Both the position numbers and the translations under genes were made by a program. Under the pieces are notes generated by a model. That model made no database searches and was not told the DNA's origin. It was given only the letters and a program-made list of their open reading frames with translations. Shown piece by piece: positions 39,401 to 45,400 of a stretch of 64,000 nucleotides of DNA. The DNA comes from Glycera tridactyla (lineage: Eukaryota). Position 1 is the first letter of the stretch, and the number at the start of each line of letters is the position of its first letter. The stretch lies in the NCBI GenBank assembly GCA_965644265.1, contig OZ286463.1, positions 105,214,001-105,278,000 of the forward strand, in the 5' to 3' direction.

Positions 39401-42400
39401 GAGAACTCACGAACCGATGACCTGAAAATGATTCTTCACAAATCCAAGTGATGGTCATTTTTCTCAGAATGAAATCTATTGAATTTGAATCTAATATGCA
39501 TCAAGTTCGACGAAACGACACTAAATGTTCACTACAATCATCATGACATTCATAGGTAATGTACAGTGTAAAATCGGTCGACGTATTGACTGAGTGAAAG
39601 GCAGGATGACACCTATTGTGGTGAATTTGGACACGGATACCCTCTGTAATACAACGAAAAGATATTGAAGAAAATATACATGCTATTCGAGATAGAGACC
39701 CATCGAGGCAAGGACAGACATCAATGTGCAGAAAGTAGAAAAGACATGAGAAGAACTGAATGAGTGCAAGATCTGTGTGTCGCTCCAATAACAAGGAGAA
39801 TTCCCTTACGATGAAGTAAGTGTTCTCAATTCCCACTGTACACCACACGAGTGCACCTGCCCCCTGAGGGCCCTGTGAATGCAAGCACGTGATGCCAATG
39901 ATCCTTCACAGCATTTCATGTGAAAACAGGTTCCACTTATCTGCCTGCATCTACTGAAATATGATGAGAACCATCAAGTTCATAGCCATGTAACTATACC
40001 AGTGAAGATATAGAGAAGAGAACCGAGTGCATTTAACTTTGACGACCCGAGAGATATCTGAAGAAGTACAAGCTACATGACACATACCATGCATACCACA
40101 ATCCCGCCAGAGCAGCGAATCCACATTGAACCACATCGGCAAAAATATCTGTTTCATGCGCAGGTGAAACGAAATCAAAAGTGCTTGTGACCCCTTGAGT
40201 ATACCTGTTCAATTCAATAAGGGTCTCCAATGAATTTTTGGTGTGTGATGGTGATATCCGACCAACTACCTTACTACCCGGGTGTGCCTATAACCAAACC
40301 TATCACTCATCCCTGAAGCGATTTGTGAAATCATTTCATGAATCAATGCAATGTCCTATACCGGGATATTACTCCAGTTTTCTGATTTGATTTCAAATGA
40401 ATATGTGGTATACAAGTCCAAAATACAATCACTCATGCTTCAGGTATAAGCTTTCTATGGGATCCGTGGAGACACCCAATATGGATTACCTTTCGACACC
40501 GTGGTGGAAGCTAGACTGTGGGTGGATCTGAACATTCTGCGCAGTCCAGGTATATCTTGTAATGACAATGCACTTCTTGGGCGTTTTGTGGCATATCCTT
40601 TCCCGGCCAGAGTGGGCATACTGGTATGATCAGATGGTATGTATTTCCCCTCCTGGTTATTGAGTGAGAGTGTCGAGCCTGCTTGGCTGATACTCTTGTG
40701 GTCTTCCAGGGCCAGTAGCATGGGCATACTTCTATAGTGAGGATGAGCCATTTTGTTTTGGTTGAATGTGGGAGGCAGGCTGCGCCGATCTCCGGTGGAG
40801 ATTAGGCTTGAAGCAAGAGACATATTATCAGGTACATCTGCTTCGTATAATCTGCGCAGAGAGAATGTTGTATCTGAGGAGGAGTCATTATCATGTATCC
40901 AGTCAGCCGTCTCAAACACTAGCTTCAAATTGGTGCCATCCATCAGTGTCACGTCACTATCAATTCCTTCTTCTATGAACTTGGCGGATGAAGCAAACAT
41001 AGGCCTGATGTCATTCCCATCATCCGTGTAAACCAGACTGAGTATATCACCATCGGTTGTTTGTGCACTGGGTGCTTCTTCATCGAACATGATTCGGAGG
41101 CTGGTTCCATTATCAATGTTGAGAACTGCGATGTTGTCTTGTGGCGTCATCTGACTGATAGAGGAACGGGTTCGGGACATCTTGCCCTCTGGATCCAATC
41201 CAACGCTGACAACAGACACAGTAGGTGAGCGAGACATGAATAATCTATTGATACTAGTCCCATCTCCAAATCCAATCAAGCTTTTAGATTCCTGAATTGA
41301 TACACTCGATTGTGAGGACTTCTTTGGGTGCCGCATGTAGCCAGTACGTCGTTGCCCCACCATGCTGACGGAATCATCAGGGCTTATACTGGGTATGCTC
41401 AACATTGACATACCACTGACACTCATTCCATCACCGTAGCCAGCCAGGCTGGCGCTATCTCCAACTATTGAAGTGCCAACCTCCGATTTGAAAAGTCCTC
41501 TCATGCTTTCTCCTTCATCATTCATGTAGACGCTCACACTATCATTAGGTACGACCATGCTGATGGAGTCATCCGGGGTGATGGTTGGTAGTCGACTAAC
41601 ACTCATGACGTCAGCATATCCAACCAAATCACTGTTATCACAGGGGATATCATTCCCAGGCTCATCCGGCGAAGTGATGCCGCTGCCATTGTGTGTTATG
41701 GCTGTCGGAGACTTGGAGATGACTGAAGATGAAGAGCTCGCTGGTTGATGGACGACTTGCATGTTTATAGTACTACCGGGTTTGATAGACACCACACTTC
41801 CAGCCCGTGAATAATATGAACTCATAATACTTGCATTATCATCCAGGTTTAGGTTTGCCACACTCGCTGCACAGAATAGTAACCAATTTCAAAGTAAGAG
41901 CAAAAAAAAGGAGGAAAATACAAAATGTCCATAAGAAATATTTCCTGATATGCTAGTAGTTTGGTGACGATTGAAGCATATAGATTTCACAAAATAGGGA
42001 AATAGATGCAATCATTTTACAAGTGTAGGCATTGCTTTCGTTAGTTTTAGGTCTTATCACTCTAATGATTTCGTGAGCGATGAACCCCAGGTATACGCAC
42101 AAACATCTCCATCCATACTGCTGCAAAGTGTAAGAAGTTGTCGCGATAATACCAGTTCATTCCACCCAAATCAAGCAACTTACTAGGATTCTGACATACT
42201 GTTAGTCAAAGCATCTTAACTTGGGTCGAAGCATTCCAAATGCAGATGAATTATCCTAAATTCTGTCCAAGTATAAAGATTCAGCAATGGAAATGACATC
42301 ATGCAACATTCATACAGGTTACTGCGGGTATGTTTGTATTGAAGGTGAAGGAAGCATTGGTTGTTTAGAATCTTCGGATATGGTTAGTTTGAAAGAGGAT

Positions 42401-45400
42401 GTAAAATCGAATCTCACATCAATATATTTGATAAGACAATTGTATTCATGTGAAGAGTATTTGTTGCGAAGTTTCCCAAATTGTTTTTGTTGGCCATGAT
42501 GGCCTTGTCATCTATAGATGTTGATGGTGATCCCATAGAGCTATATCGGATGCACCATAGCATGCTATCGCTATCAGTTGTTATTTACTCTGTGTGTATG
42601 TTGATCTGAATGTCTGGATATACATGGTTCCAAGTATTCAGACTGCACTTACATATATTTGCGTGAAGATCTGTTAAACCACCAACTCCGAAGAAAAAGA
42701 TTACTTGTATGTTTGTAATGTACATATGGAATAAAACTGAGTTACAATGCAAGTAATATCATGATGTTCCTATGCAACTTATTCGATTTTAAGCTTGTAT
42801 TAAGAGCCTGGTTGCCGTTGAAAGGCTTGATAAAGCAGCAATTTTTTTTTTCAAAGTACTTCATTAATAGATCATGGCAAATTATATCAGGCGAGAAATA
42901 TCAGCTGATCAGTGATCTTAGTTCCCTGACAAGCAGAAAGCAATATCGAGAACATGCATTCTACATACATACATACATGAAATATTCATAAGCATTTTTA
43001 GGTTGCATACGTTTCAGGGTACATCTCTCTGAATGTACTTGCATGTGGAGGTGACATGCACTACTGTTTAGCTTACATTGATTTAAAGAAGAAGCTTATG
43101 ATGAATAGCGCAATATGGGAATATATTCTAACCTCTTCCTATATCTGGGTTGGAATCTGAAGTGACAATAATCTTCGGGATATTAGGCCTGGCGGGTGGA
43201 TCAGACGATTTGTGATGCTTCTTGGAGTTATGTTGCTTCTTGTATTTGAGTCGAGGACTGGAGCCCTTCTCAGCGGAGCGTTTATTAGATTGACTCATAC
43301 CTTTAGATCGGCTGATTTGAGAGTTAGCCAAACTCTGACGAGACCCAAACAAATGGCGAAGACCAGGATCATCTGCTATTGTCAGTGACTTGCGGTTGGT
43401 GGAGGTGGTGCTTGGAGCAATGGAGACGGCATCATCATCATCAAGTCCATATAATCTTCTCAAACTGATTCCATCGCCTGATGAACTCTTTCCATCCACG
43501 TTGTCAGAAGATGGGGCCTCAAACATCAAGCGTAAACTAGTTCCATCTCCCAAAGTCACAACACTGCGTCTGTCACTCTCCTTAGCGGGGGGTATTACAT
43601 CAGCTGATGCCAGCATCCGCCGGATGCTGTAGCCATCATCAACCATCACCATACTCAATATATCACCTTCTAGAGTCTGAACTATCGGTGGATTCTCCTC
43701 GAAAAGTAGTCGCATGCTTCGACCATCATCCAAGTTCACCACACTGACTACATCAGATTCCTTGACATCTTTCCTACTTGGTTCACTTGACTCGAACAAA
43801 ACACGCAGGCTTTTACTATCGTCCATTGTCATCATGCTGACCGAGTCTGCATTGGGGCCGTTGACAACGCTGGCTGGTCTTGAGGCAAACATGTTCCTAA
43901 TACTGGTACCATCTCCTGCTTGGATGCTGGTTGTATCTGCATAGCGGCCAATGACAGTAGGTGGTCGCGATTCTCCACTACCGCTCGATGAACTAGGGAG
44001 ACTATAGTCATCCATCCCACTGATCATACTGGGAGCCTGGGAAGCGAACATCCTTCTCATACTGATTCCATCATCTGTTGTCTTGATGCTGATGATGCTA
44101 CGGACTTCGTGGTTCTGGGTGACTATGCTGGGTGCCTGCGACCGGAACATATATTGCATACTGCGCCCGTCTTCACCCAAGGACTGCATACTCGGAGATT
44201 GAGCCCGATTGAGCGAAACTGACGAACCAGCGATACCTGAAAGAGTAGGGTCATATCAGTACGAATGCATTAAATGGCAGGTGGTGATCTAGTATGTTTT
44301 TCAAACTAATATGTTGATCATGCTATCCCTTGATAGGTATCAAAATACCATACAATATGTCGGATTTTCGAAAGTACACCACTGGTGAATCACAAGCACA
44401 TTATGGCCGAAACTTTCATATGACTGATATGAAATAGAGAGGTAAATAGTTCTGTCAGAGTACCAACGTACCCGATGAAATGGTGACAACAAGAAAGATG
44501 AAGTTATAGATCTTTTCCGAATGAGTGAAACGACGGACATTCCAGCTGTCAGCTGATCATGGATGAGGTAATCGATCATAATGACAAACCAATATTGATG
44601 ATCAAGAGGAGGGATTTCAATGATTATGATCTACCGATTGCCTATCAGCAGATACCACCATGAAATATTGCTCAGACTTATGTACATTTTTTTATGTGAA
44701 TCTATGACCAACAAGAGTGTCTTCTTCAACAAAGTGATTTTGTACCTGTATGAGTCTGATGTATCATCGAAATAAAAAAGATATTCATTACCCTACCAAT
44801 ACCAAAACTTTCGATATAAAAGCGACTATATTCGATAGCGATAGCATCCTTTGCCTTTCAAATGATAAAAAGCAGCTAGAAATGATTCGACATTCATGGT
44901 AGTTAGGGTTACTTACTTCCATTGGGTACCTTGAGTAGTGATTGCTTCATCTTGCTCTTCTCAGCCTGTATCTGCTTCTGCTCCTCGCGTAGAGCCTTCT
45001 TAGCAGCATGTTTGCGTAGTTTCTCCTCCTCAGAGATCCAGATGTAGGACTGGATATTGGTGATTGTATGGACACCAACTAGAACCTCACGACCGAAGCT
45101 TCGACAGTCATAACAGCGGATGGTGATCGGAGGCCAGTAGTGCTCATCATCGGGCATTTCCTGAAAATGAGAGTAAATTCCTTAACATGCATGTGTGACG
45201 GGTGAGTTCCGCACACCCAGGTCACCATTTCTTCCCCGATCACGTTTGGTACAAACGGGCCAAATAAGGACTCCAGCAACCATTGAACCTGAAGTACCGG
45301 AGTCTGCAGTTGTTCAAGATGATTGATCTCGATATCACTGTATTTGCAGAGACTAAAATTACCTCGCAATTGAACAATGGTAAATGGTGTTATTCTAATG

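Follow-up and report, generated by a model that had tools for sequence, protein, structure and literature searches.

A repeat-built insert with a tandemly duplicated giant exon in the C2E-C2F linker of a ferlin gene of Glycera tridactyla

Tandemly duplicated exons used as alternatives are a general phenomenon in animal genes. The linkers of ferlins were long regarded as passive spacers, and recent work has described them as spliced, cleaved and membrane-binding. In dysferlin, the alternative exon 40a is located in the linker considered here, a position given as 'between C2DE and C2E' under the earlier nomenclature (PMC4230592), and it is by cleavage in this same linker that calpain releases the C2F-C2G module (PMC12264198). 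Further towards the N-terminus, a preprint describes the spliced disordered C2A-C2B linkers of vertebrate ferlins as binding acidic membranes (bioRxiv 10.1101/2025.03.15.643383). Here we describe a ferlin gene of the annelid Glycera tridactyla whose C2E-C2F linker carries a large insert, built of short repeats and encoded in giant exons. The gene is located on the minus strand of a stretch of 64,000 nucleotides (nt; NCBI GenBank assembly GCA_965644265.1, contig OZ286463.1, positions 105,214,001 to 105,278,000 of the forward strand), called the window below, and all positions are those of the window. A preliminary description of this stretch, made from its letters only, had proposed two giant paralogous exons in the ferlin linker. 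We consider it fairly probable, well short of certain, that the insert is a lineage-restricted repeat expansion of the C2E-C2F linker, with one giant exon (A) used with two donors, a second one (B) acting as a conditional cassette, and the whole forming a flexible multivalent loop.

The insert is encoded by exons A and B and extends into a third exon, C, all on the minus strand. Exon A (44236..43133) is 1104 nt or 368 codons long, between the acceptor tctttcag/G and the donor GAG/gttaga (the slash marks the splice site), and exon B (41866..40490) is 1377 nt or 459 codons long, between ctgtgcag/C and AAG/gtaatc. Both are of phase 1/1 and divisible by three, and their lengths and AG/GT borders are those given in the preliminary description. 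A second donor inside exon A (43299-43301, AAAG/gtatgagt), nearer to the consensus than gttaga, had been missed. It divides the exon into a core (44236..43301; 936 nt, 312 codons) and an optional 3' extension (43300..43133; 168 nt), which ends at the weaker downstream donor GAG/gttaga and encodes 56 amino acids (aa) of basic, K/H-rich character with an isoelectric point (pI) of 10.6. The acceptor of exon B is preceded by a long pyrimidine tract, its donor AAG/gtaatc has no G at +5, and the intron between A and B measures 1266 nt with ordinary GT-AG ends. Exon C, the 602-nt exon with the DWWSKY motif that had been placed after them, was located at 38955..38354; one clear repeat unit at its 5' end is followed by Ser-rich and K/E-rich stretches and then by DWWSKY. 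No stop is present in the coding frame of either exon A or exon B, against 19-42 stops in the other two minus-strand frames of these exons (21-42 for exon B alone), 9-32 in the plus-strand frames and 16-33 in the frames of the neighbouring introns. As the preliminary description had claimed for the two exons, every combination of them keeps the frame: all six combinations of A (short or long) and B are in frame and free of stops. The linker, measured between the C2 domain end and DWWSKY, would count 226 aa without A and B; A alone would bring it to 538 or 594 aa, B alone to 685 aa, and the two together to 997 or 1053 aa.

The three exons share a repeat whose core reads [DG]DGxS[MIL]Rx[ML]F, with an alternating hydrophobic stretch before it and x-S-x-x-P after it. 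When scanned with a hidden Markov model (HMM), the clear units were found to be 24 aa long and spaced by about 30 aa, with the consensus D..S....DDGxSxRxMFxS..P, and the spacers between units range from 0 to about 60 residues. The array spans 44198..38861 on the minus strand and contains 14 clear units, with 8 in A, all in its core, 5 in B and 1 in C (38861-38932), together with several degenerate copies, of which exon B also holds several. When the repeat profile was run against the complete 2.04-Gb assembly in six frames, only these 14 places came out at E<0.01, and the whole of exon A used as a query matched only itself and B. Since the genome holds only these two copies and the repeat profile occurs in this gene only, neither a mobile element nor a gene family is indicated. 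None of the collections searched, whose coverage of animals is uncertain, yielded a relative. A profile of A and B gave no match among 1.84 billion protein representatives, and a word search with exon A matched none of 3312 candidates, in a length window that excludes full-length ferlins. The ESM Atlas gave no usable match, Pfam gave none for exons A, B or C, and the repeat profile found chance-level matches only among PDB sequences. The Xin repeat (PF08043) was considered as a candidate relative and rejected: with E values allowed up to 10, its model matched neither exon A nor a five-unit block of 140 aa nor individual units, and a genome-wide scan with it listed no place in this gene.

The splicing of the insert was followed in four small RNA runs (X1-X4) of one study, taken as Logan contigs, with the library type not on record, and aligned to 38890-44889. 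Contigs lose rare isoforms; such data show what is used and not what is never used. Contig matches end exactly at 44236 in all four runs (44234 in X1), and beyond this place the contigs carry on with the end of the upstream exon, in reverse complement; two of them are 1604 and 2053 nt long. The junction 44917-44236, one of those listed for checking in the preliminary description, is seen in this way in the four runs, where contigs join the upstream exon to exon A. In each of the four runs, contigs span the whole of exon A, and they reach over its extension (43133-43300) in X1-X4. On its 3' side, a joint from 43301 to 38955 was observed in X1, X2 and X4 and a joint from 43133 to 38955 in X1, both with GT..AG ends. 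The joint from 43133 is another of the junctions listed in advance, and the one from 43301 shows that the additional donor is used. Both joints lead from A to C and skip exon B. No loose end that would suggest a form skipping A was detected at 38955 in the contigs of the four runs. Since all observed junctions skip B, the observed linkers are 538 or 594 aa long and the observed inserts 312 or 368 aa, and the insert of about 830 aa and the spacer of about 1000 aa that had first been put forward do not correspond to any form seen here. Two features of the intron between B and C were recorded in passing, a CT-rich low-complexity tract (39229-39316), passed over as a repeat in the alignment of the contigs, and a 3-nt insertion polymorphism (TCT) at 38989, just upstream of the exon C acceptor, which X3 and X4 contigs carry. 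Exon C is also present in runs X5, X6, X8 and X9 of a second study (2018), filed under another organism label: they contain 28-70% of its 31-mers, which points to the same species or a very close one and makes them a source of independent RNA or DNA evidence. Run X7 contains exon C as well.

The host gene of exons A and B is a ferlin, otoferlin-like, on the minus strand. A Pfam scan of the minus-strand pieces of open reading frames (ORFs) in the window gave matches to Ferlin_C (PF16165, E 4.8e-16, 16716-16931), to dsrm_Ferlin (PF22901, E 1.9e-15, 25398-25784) and to C2 (PF00168) at 26387-26587, 53878-54198 and 61831-62082. The constitutive exon upstream of A (45160..44917, minus strand, donor GGAA/gtaagt) encodes the end of a C2 domain, recognised in a 10-letter peptide, and about 40 K/E-rich residues. 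Among PDB sequences, it was aligned with the last C2 strands of otoferlin (chain 9qe2, 1042-1082), dysferlin (1438-1476) and myoferlin (1414-1449), and the DWWSKY motif was aligned with myoferlin around 1503. These two alignments to myoferlin put the corresponding gap in the human protein at about 53 residues. The preliminary description had given the linker as short in vertebrate otoferlin; the shortness holds for myoferlin, which is the protein measured here. Downstream of exon C, two more C2 domains (C2F- and C2G-like ORF pieces), a dsrm-like domain and three alternative anchor exons were found. With the end of a C2 domain before it and two C2 domains after it, the insert belongs to the linker that is called C2E-C2F when seven C2 domains are counted.

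The paralogy of A and B, and the exon duplication proposed from it, were borne out by several comparisons. BLASTP aligned the two exons with 36% identity over 273 aa (E 1e-27) and with a collinear order of repeats, and both peptide pairs quoted in the preliminary description are present. The homology stops at the splice sites. Both the exon A core and exon B end in ...SKG/gt after a conserved PGLR..F....SLA block. The donor at 43301 is therefore homologous to that of exon B, so the short exon A is the ancestral form and the long form a 3' extension; the 168 nt past the internal donor look like former intron that was exonised. Distances between A and B (Nei-Gojobori) are about 1.65-1.8 for synonymous sites (dS) and 0.6-0.68 for nonsynonymous sites (dN), with a ratio of about 0.37, and the columns invariant between them are largely motif positions. 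Exon C is homologous to A and B only in its one repeat unit (E ~1e-3). A repeat search at the DNA level returned coding units only, with neither duplicated intron sequence nor flanking direct repeats. Exon B is an old copy of the core of exon A, made by tandem duplication. Long ORFs without a known domain inside a large gene could also be those of a mobile element, or of an independent gene lying within an intron of the ferlin. We regard this as extremely improbable: the 2-Gb genome contains two copies only, both at this locus, which also answers the transposon origin against which the exons were to be checked; their homology ends at splice sites without flanking direct repeats; and splicing joins exon A to ferlin exons at either end, by which the idea is refuted for A.

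Variants listed from the contigs, 31 in exon A (22 in the core and 9 in the extension) and 8 in exon B, were used to look at constraint. In exon A, 26 of the 31 fall on third positions (p 1e-8) and 25 are synonymous. The core accounts for 20 synonymous variants out of 22 and the extension for 5 out of 9, which indicates a weaker constraint on the extension than on the core. Exon A is under strong purifying selection. For exon B, six of the eight variants fall on third positions (p 0.02). Moreover, given an age of dS ~1.7, an unselected frame of 459 codons would have gathered about the number of stops present in the other frames, and we infer that the frame of B has been kept by selection. Exon B would thus have been a coding exon, and it probably still is one, most likely a conditional cassette used in a tissue or at a stage outside the sample. 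Where cassette or mutually exclusive use had originally been offered, the former fits B best, as an exon that is skipped and yet has its frame kept, while the latter lacks a junction from the upstream exon to B.

Several observations weigh against this reading, and most of them are those expected if exon B were a relic duplicate, no longer spliced into mRNA and with contigs that come from pre-mRNA only. No junction touches B: neither a joint nor a loose end was found at 41866 or 40490 in the contigs of the four runs of this one study, from which rare isoforms may drop out, and the junctions 43133-41866 and 44917-41866, also on the list of those to be checked, were not seen in the contigs of X1-X4. 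Unspliced contigs run across both of its sites, 41866 in X1 and 40490 in X2 and X3 (three contigs). The contigs on exon B are only 151-230 nt long and have a depth of 2-3, as in introns, both observed junctions pass over the exon, and its donor has no G at +5. Contigs cover B only a little more densely than they cover the introns (12/28 versus 13/64 bin-by-run cells, Fisher p 0.04), and the comparison gives 12/28 versus 13/52 cells (p 0.13) once the empty upstream intron is left out. Five of its eight variants are synonymous, which with only eight variants is not significant alone. The RNA is thin, with four small runs from one study, and the inclusion of B is neither shown nor excluded by it. 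A relic is nevertheless hard to reconcile with 459 codons free of stops at a paralogue dS of about 1.7, when the other minus-strand frames have 21-42 stops, or with a dN/dS of about 0.37 and the excess of variants at third positions. The motif positions are the best kept ones between A and B, and the acceptor has retained a good polypyrimidine tract and its AG. A relic would fit only if the use of B had been lost very recently, and we consider it unlikely.

The same junctions bear on whether A and B are mutually exclusive, with B used in unsampled tissues. Tandem homologous exons of the same phase are the usual substrate of mutually exclusive splicing, and only forms containing A were observed, never A plus B. 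Nevertheless, no junction from the upstream exon to B and no loose end at 41866 were found in the four runs, and inclusion of both exons keeps the frame. With the frame kept, an A-B intron of 1266 nt and ordinary GT-AG ends, exclusivity is not enforced by frame, by steric hindrance or by the type of spliceosome. We give this arrangement little credence, and retain exon B as a conditional cassette.

Whether the repeats are folded or flexible was looked at from composition and by structure prediction. The array is Ser/Asp-rich, with about 65% disorder-promoting residues. AlphaFold2 (AF2), run on exon A with a two-sequence alignment, gave a predicted local distance difference test (pLDDT) score of 31.8 and no confident segment, with short hairpins at the motifs only. 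Each unit reads as a hydrophobic strand, a DDG turn and a second strand. The mean hydropathy of the repeat part, the basic tail excepted, is 0.455-0.463, above the Uversky boundary of 0.42 and hence on the compact side. Charge-hydropathy thus does not clearly point to disorder, and the AF2 result comes from an alignment of two sequences; both weigh on the case for a flexible loop and for the disordered spacer first proposed. The repeats could be a folded beta-rich domain or a defined binding module, for instance an actin binder of the Xin type. The strand, turn and strand pattern with AF2 hairpins exactly there, the hydropathy and the strong purifying selection on A would suit such a module, and G-D-x-x-S-x-R-x-M-F-E resembles the Xin consensus, a likeness seen by eye only. 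The low pLDDT without a confident segment speaks against it, as do the failure of PF08043 to recognise the exons or any one unit even when E is raised to 10, the absence of a match of the profile among PDB sequences, and spacers of 0 to about 60 residues, which are untypical of a solenoid. A folded module is in our view quite doubtful. A related idea, for which we likewise see only a slim chance, is that [DG]DGxS[MIL]Rx[ML]F defines a new repeat that binds a peptide or the cytoskeleton, splicing setting the valency of the tether at about 9 units without B and about 17 with it. If true, this would be an isoform-tunable scaffold function that is not known for any member of the ferlin family.

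In the reading that we favour, an expanded linker with a used exon A and a cassette exon B, an array of repeats of about 30 residues is spread over three exons, in the loop that separates the fifth C2 domain from the C2F-C2G-anchor module. The array was in place first, and one of its exons was then duplicated in tandem long ago (dS ~1.7) to give A and B. Exon A ends either at the ancestral donor at 43301 or 168 nt further on, adding the 56-residue basic tail. The frame of exon B would be held open by selection; with B included, the repeats would be almost twice as many and the linker about 1000 aa long. The array may act as a flexible multivalent loop that projects from the ferlin body. Splicing would then set how long and how multivalent the loop is, by way of exon B, and how charged it is, by way of the basic tail, which might make contact with acidic membranes. 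Two further points count on the other side: the functional part of this scheme is what we infer and no more, and the age and spread of the insert are judged from one species. If correct, the scheme means that a C2E-C2F linker ten or twenty times as long as that of myoferlin can be maintained under purifying selection. The natural series of lengths and valencies (226, 538, 594 and about 1000 aa) could serve to test the role of the distance and tethering between the ferlin body and the C2F-C2G fusion module, and the repeat, being without a detectable relative, is a new motif to characterise.

Other elements were noted elsewhere in the gene. Three near-identical exons for the C-terminal ferlin anchor lie on the minus strand at 12288-12470, 14407-14619 and 16716-16931, one of them being that matched by Ferlin_C. 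A candidate for a further linker exon (29849-30742, minus strand), which adjoins a run of N, would encode an acidic run and then a long K-rich stretch, with a 19-letter peptide as an example. On the plus strand, at 51024-53363 and in a ferlin intron, tandem ORF pieces encode near-identical peptides, recognised by a shared 25-letter stretch, and are followed at 53417-53655 by a microsatellite of the dinucleotide type that translates as TPTPTP... These tandem ORF pieces are probably a satellite, or else what is left of a mobile element.

We found no description of such a ferlin linker insert in the literature, Lek et al. 2010 included, and the systems closest to it differ from it in distinct ways. 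As with exon 40a of dysferlin and the calpain-cleaved linker of dysferlin, myoferlin and otoferlin, the insert is located in a linker that is alternatively spliced, tolerant of insertions and functionally separable. Exon 40a, however, is one short and poorly conserved exon with a protease site, whereas the insert described here is of 312-827 aa, built of repeats and duplicated, and no sequence similarity was found between the two. The C2A-C2B linkers of vertebrate ferlins offer another parallel, that of a linker between C2 domains with a charge and length set by splicing, into which the tail of exon A with its pI of 10.6 would fit. They are nevertheless a different linker without sequence relation to this one, and contact with membranes is here only proposed, by analogy. 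The Xin repeat is similar, by eye, in being a short motif of G-D...R..F-E character present in many copies at intervals of tens of residues, but its PF08043 model recognises no unit of the array at E up to 10. Finally, A and B resemble tandem duplicated alternative exons in being adjacent, homologous, of the same phase and multiples of three, with one used and the other skipped. Contrary to the typical cases, in which short, strictly exclusive exons each encode a piece of a folded domain, these exons are giant, encode a linker repeat array, differ by 273 nt in length and are under no enforced exclusivity. Altogether, the alternative splicing and functional use of this linker were known already, and isoforms commonly arise from exons duplicated in tandem. 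The novelty lies in the scale, in a repeat without a detectable relative, and in a duplicated giant exon combined with an alternative donor.

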